A DNA stretch of 62,545 nt, filler included, from Choristocarpus tenellus KU-1152 (lineage: Eukaryota; Protista; Phaeophyceae), in the NCBI GenBank assembly GCA_964200185.2. It is 7 parts of 7 records of this genome, joined end to end, with 100 filler letters (N's around TTAATTAATTAA, not from the genome) between each part and the next. Parts side by side here need not be neighbours in the genome. Positions count along the whole stretch, not along the records: positions 10,214 to 17,779 come from CAXNAD020005953.1; 6 more parts are not named here. One strand, given 5' to 3'. The position numbers were made by a program, and so were the translations under genes. Below the pieces are notes generated by a model. It was not told where the DNA came from, searched no databases, and saw only the letters and a list, made by a program, of their open reading frames with translations. Of the stretch, positions 1-17,914 are shown piece after piece. Every line of letters begins with the position of its first letter. The stretch's first letter is position 1.

Positions 1-192
1 CTCACACCAACAAGTCACCCCAACAAGTCACACCAACAAGTCACACCAACAAGTCACACCAACAAGTCACACCAACAAGTCACACCAACAAGTCACACCA
101 ACAAGTCACACCAACAAGTCACACCAACAAGTCACACCATCAAGTCACACCAACAAGTCACACCATCAAGTCACACCAACAAGTCACACCAT
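1..192. repeat. 13-bp minisatellite (CAAGTCACACCAA)n, ~14 copies, intronic in the VPS9 gene
   Basis: Directly visible tandem array with occasional CAT variants; it continues past the window start. Confidence 0.95.
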
Positions 193-351
193 CACGACCT
201 CTTAATTGAACGCATTATGAATTAACAACACTGACCAAGACTGTCATAACTAACAACAATCAAGGCACACACACGCCGTCCCTTCCCTTTACAAACACCC
301 CTCCCACAACTACAACCCAAGCAACACCACAGACTGTTTTGAAAGGATCAC

Positions 352-3300
352 CTTCAGCTCCAGGATCTTGTCCATAGGGGTAGCTAGCATAGACACTCGA
401 CGGAGAGTTTGACCCGCTTTGGACAGATCGCATTGAAATCTGGCATTAACACCAAAGTCACTCTGACAACAAAAAAAAAGGAGCCATCAAGACATAAGGC
501 ATCAAGGCATCAAGGGGTGAGGAGATCGGAAAGCCACAACAGAACAAAAAAACATCCCAAAGCAGGGTTTGATATTACATGATAGGCGATGGGGGGAAAA
601 AGTAGAATAGAGTACCGCAACATACAACAATGGGGGGACAGAGAGAGAGAGTTATGTTATCATCATTGAAAAGCATGATTTTGGTTTTGTGATATGTAGG
701 AAAGATACTGGTTATGGGATGGAAGAGAGGCAAGAGTACAGGGTATTGTATCTGAAAATTGTTCTATATCCTTCGAAAGTGGGATGTTTCTCAAAAATGT
801 TGAAAGACCAATTTTGTGCTCACTTAGGGTTAGGATTAGGGTTAGGGTTCATGGCTTCGTACAAAAAAAAACGGTTCTCCGAAGTATCTGCCAACAATGG
901 AGTCACCAAAAAAGCCCGATGTCTTTCTCATCCCCGTTCCACACCAGATCAATACGTGTACTCTGCAAACATACAAGAATTGTGGGAATAATTGTGGGAA
1001 TAATCACAAAGCCTAACCCTTACCCTTACCCTAACCCTTACCCTAACCCTAGCTTGAAGGTTCAGCGGAGGTTATTATGAACAGTGTAAGCACCAAAAAG
1101 CACTTTCCCGTCAGTGTTGTACTAGTACTTAATAGACTACTCCTCAATACAACTGGCCCTTGGTCAATAAACAATTTGCACTGCATGTTGACCATAACCC
1201 CCAAAAATGCACGGGATCAGTTGGTGACCCTTAACCAATGTTCAACTCTTCAACCCAACCTAACCCTAACCCTAACCCTAACCCTAACCCTAACCATGGC
1301 ACCTTCAACATTGATATCGATATTGAGAATGATGAATGACCCTACTAGCATAATATCAATAAATATATACCTACAGCATGTCCAATTATTAGTGTTGTTA
1401 ATTAGTGTTTGGGTTAGAGTTATGGTTAGGGTTACGGTCAGAAAGTAAAAAGACAAAAAAAAAATCATGCACTGACAAAAGCGCAATACCTGTGTGCTGT
1501 GGCAAAGTTGCAAACACGCCTTCTTAAGGACTCCATCCAACCCCTCATGCAAACGGGATATCCATGGATACAAGTAAGAGTGAAGGTTTCTCAACAGGTA
1601 GCTCTCAGCAACCTGCATCAACACCGCCTGACAAGGCGACACAACAGATGCAGATCATAACGTTTGGGGTGAGACAAAACACAACTCATACCTCATTCAG
1701 ATTCCCATTTTGTCTTCTGTGCCTCAAAACTTCAACCCACTTATAAAAATAAAATAGCGTTGGAGCACCTTGCCAGCAACACACCCTTACATGAATAAGA
1801 AGCTATCGGTGGTGCCACTACCAAGCAACTCCAAGTAAAAAGAGGACAGAGTCAAAGTATCTTTTAGGGTTAGGGTAGAGCCGCGTCCATTTGGGGGTCA
1901 AAATCCAACGCTGCGATTTTGATGTAATTTGTACTATCATGTTTGTTAGCACGAGTTAATGTCCTCGTTCCGTTCACACCTTTTCATAACGTATACGTTT
2001 TACCTGCTCTGAAACATTTCGGAGTAGGAAAATATCATTAATAAAAGTGTGGGAAGCCAAGCCCCAAACGAACATACAGGGCAAAATTCGTACCCTCTAA
2101 GACACTTTCACTCACATTTATCATCAATCCTGCGAGTGTCTCAATCCTGTCCGTGTACTGTGGGAGGGAGGTCTACGACAAGAGTCACTATTGCACAGTA
2201 TTAGGGTTAGGGTTAGGGTTTTCCAAAAAAAAAAATACACAAGAAATAACATATGACAGCTCTATTCAGGAAAGACTATGGTTTGGAATCATAACAAGAT
2301 TGAGGGAGGGAGGGCAGTTGTAAGGCAGGGGCATTGCACTGGCTTATTATACCTACAGGCCCTTTCTATTGGTGGAAATATACACAATACCTCTCTACTG
2401 ATGGAATTGTCGATTTCTATCTACAGAAATATATCATTCTATCCATTGCCAAAAGAGCCAAAGTATCTTAGGGTTAGGGTAGAGTCGCGTCCGTTTGGGG
2501 GCCAAAATCCAATGTTAAGATTTTGATGTAATTTTGGCTATTGTGTTTATTAGGAAGTATCAGTATCCTTGTTCCGAACACACGTTTTCACAACATACAT
2601 AATTCTCCTACTCTGAAATATTTCGGAGTAGGTAAGTTGTCATTAAAAAAACCCCTGGGAAGCCAAGCTCCAAATGGACAAACAGGGGAAATTCGTTCCC
2701 TCTAAGATACTTTCACTCAAATACCTACCTTTCTGTCAATGGAAAGTCTCATTCCATCATAGGAATCATTCAACGAATATTTCATTTGTATAAAAGTCCC
2801 TTCCCATCAAAGTACATGCATCTCTCTCATGATAGAAATGAATCTTCTTCAAAAGTATAATAACAAACAGGAAGTAGTATCTCGTAAAAGGAAAATGTCG
2901 TACATTCAATGCAATCATTTTACGACCCCATTTAGTATATATATATATATATATATATTTGTACCGCATTCCCTAACCCTAACCTCTATGTGATAATAAA
3001 TAGTAATAATCTCAACATGACTACTGCCTATGATCGGGTTAGGGCTAGGGTTCAGCTACTGCTACGAAATTGTTCTGTTGACATTGTTGCCAGGGTCTAA
3101 GAAGTTTCTGTGAGGGCAGTCGCAGACATTTCAAGTGATTTGCAATAGTATTTGCAGTATGATACATGGACTACACCAGGGGCCATCATAGATGACCACA
3201 TCCAATTGTGGTATGCTTTGTCTTAAAGTGTATGAAACTATACCACTCATAGCACTAAGTATAAAACATGATCTTATTACTATAATCATTACTAATATGT

Positions 3301-6300
3301 CACCATTTCACTAGAATTAGGGTATGGTTTGAGGTTGGAGTAGGTTTACTTTTTGCTCTTCAACAGTGGAGTTCAAAAACAAATGTTCAAAAACAAACAC
3401 CTTAGTAACCTTAGTAACCTTAGTAACCTTAGTATCCCTCTTCTAAATGGTGCTTTTTGAATAGCTTCAGCTCGGTGCATTTGTAAGCGCTTGAATCCGT
3501 GGAATTGGATTGATGTGCACAACATAGACAGTAGCTAACTGGATTACCCTTCACCTGGCCCTAATTCTAATCCTACTTCACCAATAAAACGTCCACAAGT
3601 ATCTCACATATACCCCTCTCAACAAAACTCTACGATATAGTGTGTGTGTGTGTGTGCGTGTGAATCCCCAAGAACCTGTAGAAACAGGTTTCAGTTACAC
3701 GCTTTGAACTGAAGGGGTTTATAAGCAAAGGTTAAATCTGGCCAAATCTTCTAATGCGCTCAAATTTTGAATTATCTCAAATTTTGAATTATCAAAATTG
3801 GGCAGAAATGCAGGAAGCAATGCAAATAATGTGCTGAGTGCTACAGAACTTTGCAACTAGGGCACACAAACACACACATGAGAACAGAACCATATGACAA
3901 CCATCCCTCCGCTTTCAGGTTCAATTGATCACCAGTAGAATCATATGAATTCAATCAATTCGATTCAAGGTGTTAATTCAAGTATACTGACTACCTAAGG
4001 GGTCTCTGACTTGTGCACAGTCCTGATTGGTTAACCATCATGATGAATGGCACACAATTTAGGTGCACACCATGTTTTCCTTGTCAGGAATTTTACTACG
4101 ACTTTGGACAGCCCCAAAAACCTTCTCCCCCCTCCCCCTATCTTGGAGACACTCCAACCTAGCCCTATTCTTAATCCTTCCTTTCCCCACTCTTGTTACA
4201 AAAGCTCCCAACAACTCCATTCAACATACCCCCTGTCACGTGTAAACATTGATATCACCACTATAGGTATCAATTTTCACCTCCTACGGGAGGCTGGTAC
4301 CTCAAGCTTAAATCCTTCACAGCTGCAATGTCCAGCTTCACTCCCCACTGTATATTACACACCTTGCAAAGGCATTGGCTGTATCTTTCATTGGATTTGG
4401 TTTCTACATATGCCCTGCCTCCATGCACCCTACACAATTGCAACATACATATAAAGACAGTTAGCACTCATACATAAACAAAATCAGTAATTACTCCTCA
4501 CCTCCCTCTCCTCCTTCCCTGCCCAATCTCCCCCAAGTCCATCAGCTGCACCTCTCCCACGAAGGCATTCAGACGCTGCCAGCCATATGGAACTCCTCGA
4601 CCACTGCTCTTTGACACATTGCTGCAGACCTGCCCTTGAGTCATGAGACCCAGCCTTACCGCCCCTTGAGAGCACCCTACCAACCTCCACTGCAAAACGC
4701 TCCATTTCCAAGAACACGCCTTCCAGCTCTGTTGTATGGCAGTAGACATCAGTAGAATAACATACAGTGCATCCTACCACAAAACTGAGTAGTACTTAGT
4801 TCAACAAAAAGGAGAATAAATAATAAAAAAAATGCAATCAAAATATTTCATCTTACTAATTATTTTTTTGCCCTGCAGTACAGTACAGTACAGTACATAC
4901 ATGCATACCATCCACAACTTACCACAACTTAGAATCATAACCTGCCACAATGACTATTTGTCGAGCACCAGGCACTACTTGAAAACGACCTAGAAGGGCT
5001 CCCTAAAGTTGAGACTCAAACAGGAATCTTCAGGCGTGTCATGCAATTCTATTTGAACTGGAAACTTCGGGTCAGTGGGCTAGGAGGGGCTTGACTAACT
5101 TGTAGGATTCTTCCCTTACTTCTCAACCACGACAAACCTGGCAAATAGAAACCTTTCAACTGCCAACACTAGCAAGACACACCTTCTTACGCATGCGGAA
5201 ACAACAGTTGATCACTTGGAGGGTGATTTACGGGCTGGAACAAAAAGTACATATTCAGGTAGTACTCGATCCTATTGTAACACACATTAAAGTACTTAAC
5301 AAGCGTCAGGCATGTACTAGAAGTACATAGGAAAGTAGTCAGAAAAATGATCAAGGAGCATATGAATAGGTATCACACATATCACTGTGTTGGTGGTACC
5401 TGGATGAGAACGTAAGAAGGCCATGTACTTGGTCACCACTGAGGTATCAATCTCGTGAAGGCACTCCGGAGGAGACACTAGACCCCCCAGGAGTGGTCTT
5501 GCTAAGTGCAGCAGGCGTACCATTGCCTCCCCCTTGTTGACAGAAACCTGGAGAGGACAAGAACAACCATATCATACAAACGTAACTTCTAAAAAGCAAC
5601 CAGATATAAGCAAGTGCTGCCATGTACTAACTGTAAAAACACACGCTTGCACATACACACACACAAAAATGCAAAAATAAAAAATGAATAATCCACATGC
5701 CACGCAGTCATCATGTGTAAGAGTAATATGCAAATGCAAAACTAGATCAACCACAACGATCAAGGTAACTAGTAACAAGCAAACAGTGTGCAGCCCTAGA
5801 CCCTTGTGCCAACCAAATTATTCCATTCACTGTGTACTCCATTTCCCCAATCTTACAAGGCACCATATCCCATCAAAAGCACTCACCACATTGTCTTCAG
5901 CACTCAGAAGAGTCCCATTTATCAAGTCCTGTCACATCACCCCCCTTCCCACCCCCACTCCCACACACATCATCACCACTCAGAGGCATTTCTGAACAAC
6001 TACAGAAGGGATAGTCTATTCTCAATGCAGAGAGAGAGATAGCAGAGGGTAGAAGTAAAAGGGGGTTGCCTCACCTTTGTAGCCTTTGTAACCTTGTTAC
6101 CAGACAGATCCTTCTTGTTAGATCGCTCTCCTCTACCCAGTCTTAATTGCCTTACACCCCACTCCCCCTCCCCCCCCTTTGTCTCCTCACTCTCACTCAT
6201 TGTAATGACATCAACGAAGGGGGAACCATTCTTCCTCCCTGCCCCCCCCCCTTCAACCTCAACAAGATCCTCAGCAGTGGATGATGATGGCTCCTCATCC

Positions 6301-10213: not shown

Positions 10214-10599
10214 CCCACCTTCGACACCATAAGAGCCCCTGAATGAAGAGAAGGCGGGAGCAAGTGTGTAGGTCCGGCATGCGTCAAACTTGACAGTGAT
10301 ATCACACAAGTAGGTATCGTAGGGATTAATGAAATCTCATACCACTAACATTATAATAGTACAATGAGTGTGGAACGCAAGGCAAATAACAAATGCAAAA
10401 AATGCAAACAATAGGAAATTCTGTAATAGAAGGAAAGACAGCAAAAATAATGTAGTCAAGACAATTAACACCAGCATGCGATTCTCGTACAATGAAACAA
10501 AGAACTACGAAGGACCCGGGGGAAAGAGCAAGAGATACAAAAGGAAATAGAAGGTACGAAGAACATGAAACAATATGGGGAAAGTGAAAAAGAAAGACA

Positions 10600-13500
10600 C
10601 ACGACATAATCTGTATCTCCTGAACGGCCGCATAATATTCGATGGGCACACGGACAGACTAATAACGACCATGGCGGATTGCAATAGTCTCCCGCAATAT
10701 ACCCCGTATTTCAGCGCTGGCGAACTCTGCAACTCACCGTTTAGGTGATGTAATTGCGCGGCCCACGGGTGGGGCAAAAATATCGCGATGGTGCCCTGAG
10801 GATATATCTTCACCTGCAAGCACTCAACCACCTGGCACAAGTGTGTGTTGGTCGCCTCTTCGTCGTTGAGGAGTCTTGGCTCGGCGGCAATGGACACTAT
10901 GGCGAGCTTTGGCGCATTGCGGAAGGCGAACTCTTTCAGGCGGTCTAAGGGTACCGTAGGGTTGAGAGGGCGAAGGTCGTGTAGTGCAGTGCTCTCAGTC
11001 CTGGTTGGACATCATGACACACGACACAGTAGACAGACAGCACGACAAGAAGGACAGCGTCGTAAGCAACGGTGCAGGCAATAGTATCAATAAGTGAGGT
11101 CCTGACAATATCTCTACGGCATCCCCAAAATGTCAAGCCGTACCCTCCACAATGCCAGACCCATCAGATACATCTCGTGGAAGGAGGGTAGAGTAAAAAA
11201 ACTAAGTTCCATGGCCCATGGAAACCTCCAAAAAACGACACATCCAATGCACAAAGGATGAGCAATCCACATGATGTACAAGCAGCCAAGACCTACATGC
11301 AAACCAACGCGAAACCAAACACGTAGAGACGACTTGTATGTCCGTATAATGTGCAACCACACCGAGACCCACATACACTTCTCCATGTCCGCCGTTTCGC
11401 TGCGTGAGGGGGGACGTAAAAGGCTTTGCCTGGTGGTTGACCCGCCTGCGCTCCTTGCGTGACCCTTACCCTTGTCCCTGCCCCTGCCCCGACCCACCTC
11501 TTCGTTCCCCACCGATCCAGACCCTTCATTGCCCTCCTGTGTCATGGGGCAATTGATACATAATCGATCCTTGTGCCTCTCGTCGCCTGCAATCTCCATG
11601 TAGGCACATTCGCCCATATGCGTGATGGAGCACTTTGGGCATGAATACCTGTCGCGCGTGTCATCGAACAAGAGTGTTAAACAGACAGGATAGTATTTTT
11701 CCAAATCATTAATTGGGCGCAACAACACAATGCGGGGATCCACAGTTACGAAGGACCACGAAATTGGCGGCGCAAAGCAGTACGAAGTAGTACAGGTGAG
11801 ATACAACAGTCGGCGATGTACATGCATTAACAAACAATCGGACTGTGGCAAATAACGAGACGTGGGGGTAGCGACCGCAGCGCCACACACAAAGAGACCC
11901 CGCAAGTTCCACCTGTTCAATGGCATGCACCGCTAAAGCAAGACAACCTAGTTAGCCGTTCGGGGGATTGGATGGAAACCAATCTTACGCCATTAATTAC
12001 CCGCCATCCGCGTGTGTGCACTGTTACAACCACATTACTCACCAAGACGTAGGTGGAGGATTGCATTCAGTACAGCAAACGCCCGTATTCCACCCTCCAT
12101 GACCGTTTTGTTCTTCTTCCGCACCAGGAACGCTGCCGACAGAACCCCCTTCGCCTGTATCCTCCCTGTCTGGCAATCCGTCCCCTCCCTCGTCTTCGTC
12201 CCCTGCTTTGTGTTCGCACCCTCCCTCGCCTTCTTTCTCACGGCCATCTGATGCTGAACCGTTCTTGCTCTCGACGTCTGCGCCGCCGCCATCACAGCCC
12301 CACCCGCTGTGAACCCGGTGGAGGTTGACCTGGTTGAGGACATCCTGGTATTTCCCATCCCAGGTGGTGAGGTAAGCGCGTAGAGTCGAGTCCTTCTCGA
12401 GAATCTGGTGGTGGACACAGCGGAGGATTTTGTTGAGGAGAGGAGGGGACGATGGCGACGTCAAAAATGGGAGAGTGTAATGGAAGTACGAGAGCATGTC
12501 AATCAAACAGAGCAAATGATACGGTTGACGTGGTGAACGTGTTTAATGGAGGTGGCTTGCGGGGCGAAATAGTTTGAAAGAGGTCCATGTCGAGGACGCC
12601 AGCCTGTCTGTAGGTTACGACAGTGACGCGTGTTGGAGGCAGAAACGAGGTGGAGATCGACCAAGATCGTTGTCTAGAGTTGAAGGCAACGGTTGGCTAT
12701 TCCCGCTATTAGCAACGAAAGACTAGAACTGACAAAACAGGATCGTTTGTTGTAGGGAAGGCAACTCTGTCGCTCATGATGATGATGAAGACCCACCACC
12801 AATCCTACCAAGCGTCAACTAATTGTTTTTGTACAAGCCATTTCAGCTGTAATTACGAACACAGGAGGCACACTCACGGCTCTGACCCATTGCAGAGGTT
12901 TCATTCCGACAACCGTCGAGATGTTTGCCCTCAGCTGCCAGACGGGCCCCCTTGTTGGTCGCCAGATGAAACCTTCTGCAGAAGTTTGGGCCACCTCCCT
13001 CTTCCTCTCCTCGTGGTGGGGCTTGACCCAGAGGTCGTGCATATTGCACTTCTCATATGCGAGCCTGTCCATTTCCCTGGCAGCCCGTGTTACATTCTCG
13101 TAACGTCCGAAATTCAGAGCAGTTTTGCAACAATCAATAAGTGCGGTGCCGAAAAAGACGCTGACGGTATATTTTATAATTGAGGGGCGCATGGCGACGT
13201 ATGGGTGCACAGGAGATACGGAAAAGGCAAGAAAAGAGAACCGCTGCAACTGCAACATTTACCAACCTTTAGAACTCTGGTGTCCACTTCTCCTTGGGTA
13301 CAATCTGCCTGGTGCACGAGACAACCATCTCAGACATGTGCGCGTCCGATTCGATGTGGCTCTGATGTCACACGTCACACACCCGTATCTCTCCCCTCTT
13401 CCACATCGGTATGCATCCCTGGATGTACAAACACATTTTGATTGCTTCCTAGGAGGATCACAGAGCTATCACTCTCTCCTCAATCACCAAATGATAGTGC

Positions 13501-16290
13501 GGGGGATCCATGTTTGAGCTCGATAAAGACAAGGGATTCATCAATGGATGAAAAATATCCCTTGTCTACCCCCTACAAGGATCAAACCTGGACGGATCGT
13601 CATTGAGGTGAAAAGAGGAACTGAGAAGCGCCTATCTCCATCATACTTTACTCGGAGTTTGGAGAGCTCCTGATTGCTCTGATTACCAGTGCTTTTTGTT
13701 ACCATTTCAAGAACTGTCAAGTACTCCGAAGTATCGGACCTCAACTTTGGCGACCACTTGATGTAGGAAGAAGCAATTTGCGCAAGTCATTGTGCGTGTT
13801 GACTCAAATCATACCAGTTTGAGAACAACGTTTGCCAGGGGGTGTATTCACACAAGACTAACTGATTGACATCAAGCATACAAGAATTGGTGATGCGGAA
13901 CCAAAACACCATTCCGCTTTAGGTATTGCTTGCAAAACAAACGGGGGTATGCTAGAGAATTAGTAGTGGACAGGGTGATGAACGTCAACAGGACACTCTC
14001 CAATATCTCCCTTCATAGTGAGAAGTTTGATATGACACGCAATGACAATTGCATACACAAAGTAGAAAAGTATTTCAAACACCTTCCTGGGCAGGTCATT
14101 ATCTCCTCTTCTGCACACTGGTCTCAATGTGTTGATCATGTCCATTTCAAAACGAGTACCATGCAGGTGTTTGGTGGCTTAAGAAATACTCTTGCTCTAA
14201 ATCAACACAATTGCAGGAGAGGAAGTGCAAGATCTTCCACTTCCAGATCCTCCAAACCAAAAAGAAAGGGAAAACCTGTGAGTTCATCTTCTCTCGCGGG
14301 CAAGCAAAAGCGTGGTCATTCCACCACAAAAGGTGAGAGCGCACCTGGAAGCAGCTGCCATTTTGTCTCTGGTGCCTCAAACAATCTGTTGTTAGGGTAA
14401 TTCGAGAAGTGTAACAGATTTACGTGCCAAGTTTATCACGATTTATCTCTCATTGTAAACCTAACCAAGGATACACTCTTTTTTGCTAGTGATGTTATTT
14501 TTGCTGTAGGAATTTCGCCGTAGGAACCTTCCCGTTGAACGACTCGTACCTGCAAAACGAGAATGGCCATGAAGGACGTCAACGAGAACGATGTGCAGGT
14601 AATGATGAGGAAAGGGTCGCCCCTGCAGAAAATATTCATGGGTCGATTGTCGTAGTTCAGAAAAGACAAGAGCGCACATACACAGAAAACACACACTGTT
14701 CGTAGAATTTCCACAATACAACGAAGGGTTCTTCGTTCGACACAACAATGGCCGACTACATTCTTCATTGTAGGAGACACTTATTTAACGTTCCTGTGAA
14801 ATGTACTGCGACCTGCACACATTGCGCTTACTGCTGTATACACGATAAAACAAAGTGGCGGTTTGACTTGCCTAGCAAGCAGATGGATGCATAGCCCCTG
14901 CTTGAGAGAAGTGAAGCCAGCAAATTCCTCACGACTCAGATAGTTGAGTGTGACTGCATTGCGGTCAACCTGTGGTGACAAGGTCTCACACACTTCTTCC
15001 AGTACCTTGAAGGACTCTGGTCGAAGGTACTTTACGCCTTGCTGCCAGTTTCATAGAGTTCTTTTCGGCGGGGGAGGAACTCCCACCTTCGTGATGGGCA
15101 GAAAACGGAAAATATTATGCACCCAGTCAGCGATTATGAGGCATCGCTATTACCAGGCCAACAGGGTATGTATGAATGTGGGGGGGGGGGGTTCAGGCAA
15201 CACCGTCGATAAAACAAGCAAGGACACTTTTTATTGTTCGTCTGTGGTTAACCACACATACATACTACATGGTCACCCGAAAATCAATAAGTTGGTTGAC
15301 AGGGTTCCTAAACGCGGGATAACTATCTCGACTTAGGTTGAATAGGAGGACACAGAGAGATTTCACAACAGCTCTAACCCAACTAGAGGAGGAGTAGAGC
15401 GCCACCATCCCACCAACGTTGACAACTCCCTTACCTTTTTGTACATTTTGCGGATCTCTACTAGTGACGCTTATTTTTTCTTCGTCTGTTGCTTGATAGC
15501 TTCTTCAAGCTCGTGCTGAAAAAATATATCTTATTGTACAGCGTGCGCTCAACCACACTCTCGGTCGCGTCGTTGAATGCCATAAGCGTGGTCCCACGGT
15601 GTATTGGGCGAATGGGACAAGGGGTAGGTGGGAAGTGGTCATGGGACACACGCGGCATGCAGTAGTGAGCAACATGTTGCTATCGACAGAAAGACCATGA
15701 GGGGTAAAAAAGATAAACAACAAATAGATCCTCAGTGGGCTGACAGATGATGAAGCAAACAAAGGAAACTCGGCAACAACTTCGTACATCAGAAGAGTCA
15801 TCAGGCGATCATGGAACAACGAAAACACTCAACTTACTTTGTTGCTTTGATCAGAATAGTCAGGCGATCATGGAACAACGACAACACTCCACCACCCACC
15901 GTTGGCAATTAGCCTCTCTTCTGCTTGGTTGAACTCCATGTAGACCCGCCTCATGAAAGCGCGTTCGGGTTCAAACTCTCTCTTCAGCACCGTTATTCTA
16001 TGGTTTCCGTCCAGTGTAGGTCCTGCAATGGCGAGCGCAGTTTCGGCGGTGAGCTGGTCTCCATTACCTAAACAGTCTCGCTGGATTACGACAGATGAAG
16101 CAAACTGCTCCAACCAGCCTTTCTCGTGGATAGACTTTTGACGCGCGCAAGGCCACGCTCGCTCAGTGGATGACCATCTCCGTGCATGTGATGTTGCTTA
16201 GGTTCATCCGGTACGTGCCGAGGTAGTGATGTTCTAGGAGCGAGGACATGCCCTTCAGATCGCTGTCCCACGTTTTTGATCCATGGGCTG
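10600..16290 (-). pseudogene. Decayed multi-exon gene: ParB/Srx-like domain + linker + PHD-like finger + putative amino-DNA-methyltransferase-like region (probably TE cargo)
   Basis: Stitched across frameshifts. 16290-15900: LGTYRMNLSNITCTEMVI/PLSERGLARVK/SIHEKGWLEQFASSVV...TLDGNHRITVLK...EERLIAN. ~15590-15435: AFNDATESVVERTLYNKIYFF. ~15080-14870: NWQQGVKYLRPESFKVLEEVC. Further exons ~14550-14465 and ~13110-12888. ~12430-12040: acidic/Gly-rich linker. ~11695-11550: YPVC..CPKCSITHMGEC..CINC. ~10990-10600: PKLAIVSI...CLQVKIYPQGTIAIF, then frameshifted NPPWSLLV...TDYVVC. In-frame stops and frameshifts are present. Confidence 0.55.
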
Positions 16291-16589
16291 CGCCATCGGC
16301 GGGCGAGTGGGTTGTTGTTTAGCGAATGCTGGACATGGTGAAGGTTGGGAGGGTGTGACAGGGATCGATAAATAACAGGTGCATGTGGTACGTATGGAAG
16401 GGAACGAATTGAAATGAGGACTGAGGGATGGGAGGTGCTGCTTTATTTCATCCGGTCGGTCGGTCCTCAAAACTCAGATTTCTCTTTCCGTTGACACTTG
16501 TGTTATAAAAAATACGAATATCGAACAGCATACGATTTCATATTGGAAAGAGACAAAGAGTAACAGTTTTTTGTGATCTTTTCGTTTTG

Positions 16590-17645
16590 TACGTTTCAAA
16601 CGTATTGGATCAATGAAGTATGTGGTTTGTATTTGTATTTGTTGATGTAAAGATTAGAATATTGATATTATTTCTTAAAAAACCTAACGCACGTGTTTTG
16701 GGTCTTCAAGGGTTTAGAAGATCAGATCGGATCTTTAAAACTCTAGATCCGCTTTTTTGTCGTCTCTAGTATTTTTAAGAATACTAAAGTCGCCAAAAAG
16801 CGGTTATAGTATTTAAATAAATTGTGCGTACCAGTTGGAAGTGACCTTTTAGTTTCTGAAAATTGGAAACGTGTGAGACTCATAAAGTGTGTGCTTTGCA
16901 TTTTCAAAAATTGTAAGAACGGTTATTACTGGATTTACTATTTCTAAAAATCCGAATGCACGTGTTTTGGGTGTTCAAGGGCTTAGCGGATCCGATCGGA
17001 TCCGCTAAACCCAAAGAACCGCGTTTTGTCGTCTCTAGTATTTTCAAGAATGCAAATGTCCAACAAGTTAAGATGTTGTACTTAAAAAAATTAGAGGGTG
17101 CCAGTTTTTTTTTTACCTTTTGGTTTCTGAACATTGGAAACGTACAAGATCAATGAAGTATGTGCTTTGTATTTTTAAAAGGTGTAAGTACTGGTATAAT
17201 CGGATTTGCAACTTCCGAAAACCGTAATGCACGGATTTTCAGGACCATGGATCTCAGGGTGGTCCCACGGATAGCCCAGAGCTCAAAGAAAGTTGGTTTC
17301 GGAACATTGGAAACGTACAATATCAATTAAGTATGTGATTTGTATTTAAAAAAAAATTGTAAGTACGGATATAATCGGATTTACAACTTCCGAAAACCGT
17401 AATACACGGATTTTCAGGATCATGGAACTCAGGGTGGTCCCACGGATAGCCCAGAGCTCTAATAAAGTTGGTTACGAAACATTGGAAACGTACAATATCA
17501 ATTAAGTATGTGATTTGTATTTTTTTTTTAAATGTAAGTACGGATATAATCGGATTTACAGCTTCCGAAAACCGCAATGCACGGATTTTTGGGATCATGG
17601 ATCTCAGGGTGGTCCCACGGATAGCCTGGAGCTCAAACAAAGTTC
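16590..17645. repeat. Hierarchical tandem array: two ~270-bp units followed by three ~174-bp units that share a common first ~110 bp
   Basis: Unit starts (AACATTGGAAACGTACAA-like) at ~16590, ~16860, 17130, 17303 and 17478. The short units end in CTCAGGGTGGTCCCACGGATAGCC(C/T)(A/G)GAGCTC. The long units carry a palindrome (perfect at 16983-17008). Confidence 0.85.
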
Positions 17646-17914
17646 ATATGCCCCGCCTTTGAATCTCATCACTCCTAGACCTTCTCACTGCCCAAGACCG
17701 CCTGTTGCCCGAAAACACCATGACAGTTGCTTCCAGAGCAAGGGGGTGGCTTTTGTCGCCTACGTCTCCCCCTGTGTTGNNNNNNNNNNNNNNNNNNNNN
17801 NNNNNNNNNNNNNNNNNNNNNNNTTAATTAATTAANNNNNNNNNNNNNNNNNNNNNNNNNNNNNNNNNNNNNNNNNNNNCCCCCTCCCACTCCCCCTCAA
17901 ATAACAAAGCTCAC

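Follow-up and report, generated by a model that had tools for sequence, protein, structure and literature searches.

A ParB/Srx-like passenger gene in a decayed copy of an abundant brown-algal element, probably a Sola-1 DNA transposon

The piece at positions 10214-17779 of the window (the whole stretch of 62,545 nucleotides that was analysed, filler included, along which all coordinates are counted) comes from record CAXNAD020005953.1 of the brown alga Choristocarpus tenellus KU-1152 (assembly GCA_964200185.2). Our analysis suggests that it comes from the interior of a large and very abundant brown-algal DNA transposon, represented here by a decayed copy, which has a ParB-like passenger gene and most likely belongs to the Sola-1 superfamily; we hold this reading to be likely. 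It is carried by how the N-terminal domain folds, by the exon-intron structure of the gene, by the abundance of the locus and the decay of this copy, by conservation among brown algae, and by a head-to-head transposase-like open reading frame (ORF) in relatives. Read from its N-terminus, the passenger protein would comprise a ParB/Srx domain bearing the DGNHR motif, a part encoded by helical exons, then an acidic linker, a C4HC3 finger, an RG-rich linker and a C-terminal alpha/beta unit.

The passenger gene and its ParB/Srx-like domain

Translation of 10214-17779 gives open stretches that run in shifting frames along the minus strand, and the gene that unites them is real: a spliced gene of eight exons, from 16249 to 10739 on the minus strand, with a product of about 620 amino acids (aa) up to exon 8. 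The eight exons are supported by the joints, loose ends and exon-confined depth of contigs from X3, one of three public runs (X1, X2 and X3; one study, one organism) whose contigs were aligned over 10400-16399. Run X3 behaves like a transcriptome. Its contig depth is restricted to the predicted exons. Missing from its contigs are 12405-12877 and 13077-13266, which have GT..AG borders when read on the minus strand, and also intron 1 at 15580-15899 (joint 15579->15900). A loose end at 12041 links 11646/11648 to 12043, so that 11649-12042 is removed and the two halves of the finger are fused, and the exon 7/8 junction near 10998-11371 appears as a joint together with a loose end at 10997. The plus-strand ORFs of the piece had no Pfam match, and no RNA family of Rfam matched the piece.

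The N-terminal ParB/Srx-like domain (MSSLLEHHYLG ... LDGNHR ... LIAN) is encoded by exon 1 (15900-16249, minus strand), as found by translation, a phmmer family, an AF2 model and fold searches. A phmmer search of 1.84 billion representatives with the LDGNHR piece found 37 proteins, all of them short fragments; two of the matches listed bear the name of an organism, and both organisms are brown algae (Choristocarpus tenellus and Sphacelaria rigidula). The long matches P0022 and P0037, made of many short stretches, were rejected as spurious and repetitive. In the family alignment, the conserved domain spans ~120 residues and an intron directly follows ...IAN; the (V/T)LDGNHR(V/I) motif is conserved too, with no variation at G and H and hardly any at L and D.

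The AF2 model of this domain (pLDDT 84.7) retrieved ParB/Srx proteins as the top 50 of 50 Foldseek matches in PDB. With VIA-align, the best rows were PadC (Z 10.0), KorB (9.3), Arabidopsis sulfiredoxin (9.1), pNOB8 ParB (8.7), the free serine kinase SerK (8.3), human sulfiredoxin (7.6), SbnI (7.5) and Atu1540 (6.6). These eight rows aligned 78-97 residues with a root-mean-square deviation of 2.6-4.1, and the next row had a Z of 4.4. PHROG families of the “ParB-like partition protein” type also match family members (E 5e-6 and 4e-5). These results indicate that the N-terminal domain, as modelled, has the ParB/Srx fold. The domain had no match to Pfam ParBc at threshold; the Pfam matches below threshold were DUF6551, GmrSD_N and DndB, which we take to be families of the ParB clan. 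The GERRxRA-type CTP-binding box of the chromosomal ParB CTPase clamps was not found, the DGNHR motif standing instead. A PDB profile search with the ParB-domain alignment gave chance matches only, NCBIfam and PADLOC gave no meaningful match to the domain, and a search of the ESM Atlas for look-alikes of exons 1 and 8 gave no usable match. Two family members weakly match a PHROG “DNA methyltransferase” family (E 0.2).

The gene was compared with contigs from Sphacelaria rigidula (L001), Choristocarpus (L002 and L003) and Ectocarpus sp. 12 (L012), with two Logan contigs (L011 and L013), and with contigs derived from metagenomes in ENA/Logan (L004-L010). Collinear exons were found in L001, L011, L013 and L012. 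The seven metagenome-derived contigs hold a distant branch of the ParB family, at 44% identity. Among contigs of JGI metagenomes, IMG/VR viruses and GTDB, pattern searches for relatives of the ParB domain gave matches, and tblastn gave none.

Exon 2 (15435-15579, minus strand) starts with AFNDATESVVERTLY and is helical; its intact reading is seen in the family members P0002 and P0009. Exon 3 (14868-15041, minus strand; QGVKYLRPESF...LLARQ) has borders placed from splice signals alone, collinear tblastn matches in L001 and L011, and an X3 depth peak at 14800-14999. For exon 4 (13267-13357, minus strand; IESDAHMSEMVV...KWTPEF) the start was likewise placed from splice signals alone, and homologous exons exist in L001 and L011. 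Homologues of exon 5 (12878-13076, minus strand; REMDRLAYEK...KPLQWVRA, helical) occur in the same two contigs, and X3 joints support both of its bordering introns (joint 13075/13077->13266). Exon 6 (12043-12404, minus strand) holds a conserved WDGKYQD..NQVNLH segment, an acidic/Gly-rich linker and the first finger half, which ends in GVCCTECNPPPTS; it has matches in L001, L003, L011 and L013. Exon 7 (11372-11648, minus strand), conserved in L003 and L013, begins its finger half with (W)YSCPKCSITHMGEC, continues to CINCP and then forms an RG-rich basic linker up to MEKCM. Exon 8 (10739-10997, minus strand) encodes the C-terminal alpha/beta unit (PKLxIVSIAAEPRLL ... GTIAxxVPHPW ... HRLxG).

Across the X3 junction, the fused finger reads C-x2-C-x9-C-x2-C-x3-H-x3-C-x15-C-x2-C, so that the ligands follow the C4HC3 order. 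Conservation of both halves extends to the second Choristocarpus copy L003 and to the more distant L013; the finger was looked for in Sphacelaria L001 and was not found. PHD fingers usually have spacings of x4-5 and x2 in two loops, with a Trp before the seventh ligand. The present finger differs from this consensus by one residue in each of the two loops and is without a Trp two residues before the seventh ligand. Each half alone had no Pfam match, the finger being split by an intron.

From the sequence alone, this locus had been read as a multi-exon path on the minus strand with a ParB/Srx domain around LDGNHR, an acidic linker and a C4HC3-like finger, and our analysis bears out each of these elements. 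AF2, Foldseek, VIA-align and PHROG agree on the ParB/Srx domain; of the two outcomes expected for it, the fold matches were obtained and the Pfam ParBc match was not. The acidic linker lies in exon 6, and the finger, split over exons 6 and 7, is fused by the X3 junction and conserved in L003 and L013. Four introns and the exon 7/8 junction have support from X3, and its intron-skipping contigs bear out the path, though the library type of X3 is not on record.

Copies, decay and the carrier element

The locus is very abundant. Over 6 kb, 3,823 contig pieces from X1 and 3,422 from X2 align at 90-99% identity, and they cover introns and flanks too. Summed contig depth is not copy number, as the tool itself warns, and we read it as hundreds of copies, roughly. 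The copy in the piece is dead. Its exon 1 has lost one nucleotide near 16172/16173 and another near 16137/16138; the other copies have one extra base at each of these places. Exon 2 contains a 2-nt insertion near 15519 and a private stop, TAA at 15471-15473 (plus-strand position 15473 is A here and C in all other contigs), and exon 4 has an in-frame TAA at its end, 13269-13271. At the border of intron 3 and exon 4, a private insertion of 1,159 bp (13358-14516), recognised by a drop in depth and a joint, stands in place of 12-14 nt of the other copies (CTTTGTAGTCCC). The joint 13357->14517 is present in X1 and X2 with 12-14 other letters between the two sides, and summed depth is 25-40 (single-copy-like) within the insertion (13400-14400) and 5,000-30,000 alongside it. 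The ORFs of the insertion had no Pfam match.

The exon 2 frameshift near 15519 is found in nearly all contigs of X1 and X2 and in none from X3. Most genomic copies therefore appear to descend from a master that was already broken, and the transcripts appear to stem from intact copies. Since most genomic copies share this frameshift, they were probably amplified in trans.

Related copies show how the element is rearranged. L002 (Choristocarpus tenellus, 1-3568) is an internally deleted derivative in which window positions 16713-15390 are fused directly to 10591-10214. The upstream, promoter-side region (16250-16713) is represented in it by a blastn match of 16713-16300 to L002 845-1262 at 72%. 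The 3' region (10214-10738, minus strand; intron or 3' flank of the gene) is kept in L002 at 78-79% and in L003 at 87%, and it extends past the left edge of the piece. L003, at 87% to 12228-10214 overall, extends ~600 nt past that edge. The element is longer than 7.5 kb, and both of its ends lie outside the piece.

In relatives, the region upstream of the ParB gene holds a divergent ORF. In L011 (576-1076, minus strand) and L004 (2239-2838, minus strand) it lies ~700-800 bp upstream on the opposite strand; the head-to-head layout is seen in L011, L004 and L005, and the L011 ORF matches those of L004/L005 at E 1e-18. The supplement of PMC12477816 prints the sequence of Sola1-1_Ec32_tpase; compared by eye with its N-terminus, the divergent ORFs are ~45% identical over ~75 aa, and they have in common with it the runs CC..L.C, LE.EQ, DRK.F, DRKRFV, GSM(I/L)A..PVC, F.VS and (C)KG(T). 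Within the proteins of the Ectocarpus transposable element library, the peptides GSMIAA and EEDRKRF occur only in Sola1-1_Ec32_tpase. In the searched part of the library supplement, which is the part without the Sola1-1 header, family peptides and DNA words had no match. In the piece itself, 17720-17779 (plus strand; MTVASRARGWLLSPTSPPVL) is the best window match to the L011 ORF, aligned start to start with 50% identity to its residues 1-20, and the score was reached in 2 of 5000 shuffles. This alignment suggests that a Sola1-like transposase gene probably begins at 17720, its first 20 codons being followed by the cut at the piece edge.

The sequence-only reading had described a decayed copy of a mobile multi-copy element with a ParB/Srx and C4HC3 gene, broken by frameshifts and stops, and had recognised no transposase in the contig. 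Copy number, decay and the derivatives uphold the first of these statements: the breaks amount to two 1-nt deletions, a 2-nt insertion, two stops and the 1,159-bp insertion; thousands of contig pieces at 90-99% identity attest to many copies; and other copies, as well as other brown-algal species, have the segments together and in unchanged order. The statement on the transposase has to be revised: in relatives a transposase-like ORF is linked to the gene, and the right edge of the piece probably holds the first 20 codons of such an ORF.

Between the two divergent genes lies the structured repeat array that had been noticed on the 5' side, and it is indeed present as a tandem array (16567-17644) of two ~271-277-bp units followed by three 175-bp units, the latter sharing the first ~150 nt of the longer ones. 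It contains two palindromes, at 16754-16799 and 16979-17012, with single-stranded DNA folding z of -5.9 and -4.0; weaker palindromes in the 175-bp units reach -1.8 to -2.4. Bacterial ParB proteins bind parS or sopC arrays. By analogy, the ParB-like domain and the helical exons may bind the array palindromes in the bidirectional promoter region of the element, as ParB does on parS/sopC and as proposed for the red-algal PAG3 system described below. Coupling of the array site to chromatin or partner proteins would then fall to the finger and the two linkers, acidic and basic, and the outcome may be control of the divergent promoter, of the chromatin state of the element or of its transposition. 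Such a chromatin function of the protein is putative.

A further step would be to see here a centromere-like module of the ParB/parS type on Sola-1 elements, in which the protein binds its own array and a PHD-like finger, together with a dead methyltransferase-like C-terminus (AEPR for DPPY), tethers or marks the element. We regard this as a doubtful possibility. If true, it would mean that a transposon encodes ParB/parS-type control of its own chromatin state or inheritance.

Several points weigh against the reading of the piece as part of a Sola-1 transposon with a self-binding passenger gene. The Sola-1 assignment comes from a by-eye comparison of a non-catalytic N-terminus, of which the window itself holds 20 codons only; the catalytic core of the divergent gene lies beyond all fetched contigs. 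A search of the piece for terminal inverted repeats (TIRs) and long terminal repeats, which also compared its 5' part with its 3' part, revealed no inverted or direct terminal repeats. With neither TIRs nor target-site duplications in the piece, mobility is deduced from the copy number and the derivatives. As to the array, the read layout ends at 16399, so its membership in the repeated family is not shown, and the L002 sequence differs upstream of the point matching 16713 (it is unrelated, though also palindromic); the binding of the ParB-like protein to the array is putative. The transcript evidence comes from a run, X3, of unrecorded library type. Finally, the 1104 aa and the methyltransferase of the Ectocarpus Sola-1 accessory protein are not found here, and orthology is therefore unproven.

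The first of these points bears on an alternative in which the same passenger gene has a carrier from a different superfamily (KDZ/Plavaka, EnSpm or one not yet described) and the divergent ORF is not a Sola-1 transposase. Red-algal Plavaka elements do carry ParB-like accessory genes, Ectocarpus has many giant KDZ and EnSpm elements that bear accessory genes, and the likeness to Sola-1 was seen by eye in the non-catalytic N-terminus only. Against this stand the DRKRFV and GSM(I/L)A..PVC runs common with Sola1-1_Ec32_tpase, the two peptides found in no other library protein, and a head-to-head layout that is the same as that described for Sola1-1_Ec32. We consider another superfamily unlikely.

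Exon 8 and the methyltransferase question

The region 10508-11011, which includes exon 8, had been read as resembling the motifs of beta-class amino-methyltransferases, with an N6_N4_Mtase (PF01555) match expected for the repaired protein. In full, this alternative holds that the locus encodes, or encoded until it decayed, a chromatin-guided amino-methyltransferase: the ParB domain would direct it to DNA, histone tails would be recognised by the PHD finger, and the DNA of the element would be modified by a beta-class N6A/N4C domain, formed by exon 8 and further exons left of the piece. It draws on the Ectocarpus Sola1-1 accessory gene, which has the same layout and is reported to encode ParB-like and N4C/N6A methyltransferase domains, and on several features of exon 8, which after the ParB domain is the best-conserved part of the gene (homologues in Choristocarpus, Sphacelaria, Ectocarpus sp. 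12 and two Logan contigs; alignment A3, five lineages). Its weak AF2 model (pLDDT 62) has a beta-alpha-beta-alpha layout, as in the Rossmann fold, and about one-third of its weak VIA-align rows are S-adenosylmethionine (SAM) methyltransferases. An hhalign comparison with E. coli YhdJ, a beta-class adenine methyltransferase, places the helix-strand of exon 8 on the YhdJ segment just after DPPY (P 0.017, probability 2.7%).

The catalytic motif is absent, however. Where a beta-class enzyme would carry DPPY after a hydrophobic strand, 8/8 sequences have AEPR or AEQR, conserved across all lineages. No (D/N/S)PP(Y/F/W) in a stop-free context was found in any frame of the piece and the 13 fetched loci, including 2.3 kb past exon 8 in L013. 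The profile searches gave no support either: Pfam had no match to ten exon pieces, N6_N4_Mtase included; no methyltransferase family of Pfam, PHROG or PADLOC matched exon 8 or the blocks downstream of it in L013 and L003; and a PDB profile search with the exon 8 alignment gave chance matches only, with no PDB profile match for the downstream blocks either. In fold searches, the exon 8 model had no Foldseek match below E 1, and its best VIA-align Z of 4.4 is at noise level.

Conserved blocks continue past exon 8 on the strand of the gene (L013 2065-2397 and 2663-2854; L003 2024-2336; L002 2742-3460), a continuation that could be taken in favour of further methyltransferase exons. They contain the motifs FTCN.RVTVDD.FGH and RYT.AGDTVVS.SAE...GKWK and lie left of the piece edge. 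Mismatches show a weak third-position excess (49 vs 34 and 37), and the blocks may be further exons or belong to a conserved end of the element. In Sphacelaria and L013 a stop closes the frame no more than 10 codons past exon 8, which speaks against the methyltransferase reading. A by-eye map of exon 8 and the blocks onto the DPPY, TFN/TCN and GD.V..DPF.GS regions was rejected: hhalign of the blocks against YhdJ gave no support (probability 0.3%, neither significant nor collinear).

Thus, the methyltransferase reading is not supported, and we give the chromatin-guided enzyme a low chance. A degenerate, catalytically dead methyltransferase remnant at exon 8 is compatible with these data. Since no methyltransferase domain was found, the interpretation of the locus as a DNA-modification system, which the sequence-only reading had put forward, is not supported and falls with it.

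Relation to known systems and remaining features

One of the closest described systems is Sola1-1_Ec32, a 21.5-kb Sola-1 transposon of Ectocarpus with an accessory gene on the strand opposite the transposase; the accessory protein has 1104 aa with ParB-like and N4C/N6A methyltransferase domains, and giant Sola-1, KDZ and EnSpm transposons of Ectocarpus carry accessory genes (PMC12477816). The two have in common a brown-algal giant DNA transposon, a ParB-like gene opposite the transposase, a high copy number and mostly defective copies. In contrast to the Ectocarpus protein, the present one has ~620 aa to exon 8 and no methyltransferase was detected in it, and it carries a C4HC3 finger and an acidic linker, which are not mentioned for the Sola1-1_Ec32 accessory protein.

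In the red alga Bostrychia moritziana, giant Plavaka (KDZ) transposons carry PAG3, which combines a ParB-like domain with a 2-oxoglutarate (2OG) oxygenase; the PAG3 genes adjoin tandem arrays of inverted repeats, and PAG3 is proposed there to bind the transposon that encodes it (10.1101/2025.02.11.637652). Both are transposon accessory proteins with an N-terminal ParB-like domain. Here, a zinc finger and an alpha/beta unit stand instead of the 2OG oxygenase, and the carrier looks like Sola-1 rather than Plavaka.

The bacterial and plasmid ParB/Srx proteins (ParB/Spo0J, KorB, Noc, PadC and sulfiredoxin) resemble the present protein in their N-terminal fold (Z 10 to 6.6), in a Gly-x-His-Arg-type motif at the equivalent strand-helix turn, and in having a palindromic array nearby, comparable to parS/sopC. 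However, structural alignments show 11-21% identity, the motif is LDGNHR and not GERRxRA, and the gene here is eukaryotic and has introns, and no ParA partner was seen. ParB-methyltransferase fusions are also known from phages and plasmids, and ParB-linked methyltransferases from chlorophytes and chytrid fungi (ParB-HTH-Dam, where HTH is helix-turn-helix), together with phage ParB-terminase loci (Iyer et al. 2015; PMC4738411). The present gene likewise joins a ParB-type N-terminal module to DNA- or chromatin-related modules, but without the methyltransferase motifs or profile matches of those fusions.

ParB-like accessory genes on giant algal transposons and adjacent inverted-repeat arrays were published in 2025, and self-binding, perhaps self-marking passenger genes of giant transposons are a recent idea in red, green and brown algae. 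Our study adds a family across brown algae (Choristocarpus, Sphacelaria and Ectocarpus) with a predicted ParB/Srx fold, a neighbouring palindromic array as a concrete candidate binding site, and a version with a C4HC3 finger and no detectable catalytic domain, unlike the published ParB-methyltransferase and ParB-oxygenase versions. Ectocarpus has negligible 5-methylcytosine (5mC) and is without H3K9 and H3K27 methylation, and how brown algae silence transposons without these usual marks is unknown (PMC12477816). Most copies apparently derive from a frameshifted master, and the transcribed copies appear to be intact ones. The locus is of value for annotation and as a test case, not as a new principle.

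It is very improbable that the locus is no transposon at all and belongs to a lineage-specific, multi-copy host gene family or a segmental duplication, the piece holding one pseudogene. Such a family would fit a transcribed gene with introns, whose protein is conserved across brown-algal orders and around which no termini or target-site duplications were seen in the piece. It would not fit thousands of contig pieces at 90-99% identity that span introns and flanks as well, an exon 2 frameshift common to nearly all genomic contigs, an internally deleted derivative (L002) that keeps both ends, or a transposase-like ORF alongside the gene in relatives. An endogenous phaeovirus was rejected in view of the introns, the copy number and the lack of matches in viral contigs.

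Some minor features of the copies were also observed. In L002, the 3' segment is duplicated (2091-2368 and 2382-2764), and upstream of the gene, at ~700-830, there is a long inverted repeat that forms a hairpin. L003 2630-2767 and L002 150-289 share 138 nt at 78% identity in the same orientation; the L003 stretch lies just past the end of the L002 3' match, and its L002 counterpart ~550 nt upstream of the 5' homology boundary. The match may reflect a terminal direct repeat, copies arranged in tandem or some repeat without relation to the element. Intron 1 of the piece contains a 40-nt direct repeat (15794-15833 and 15853-15892; 88% identity, 59 nt apart), and one X1 contig is without one copy of it (joint 15800->15860).

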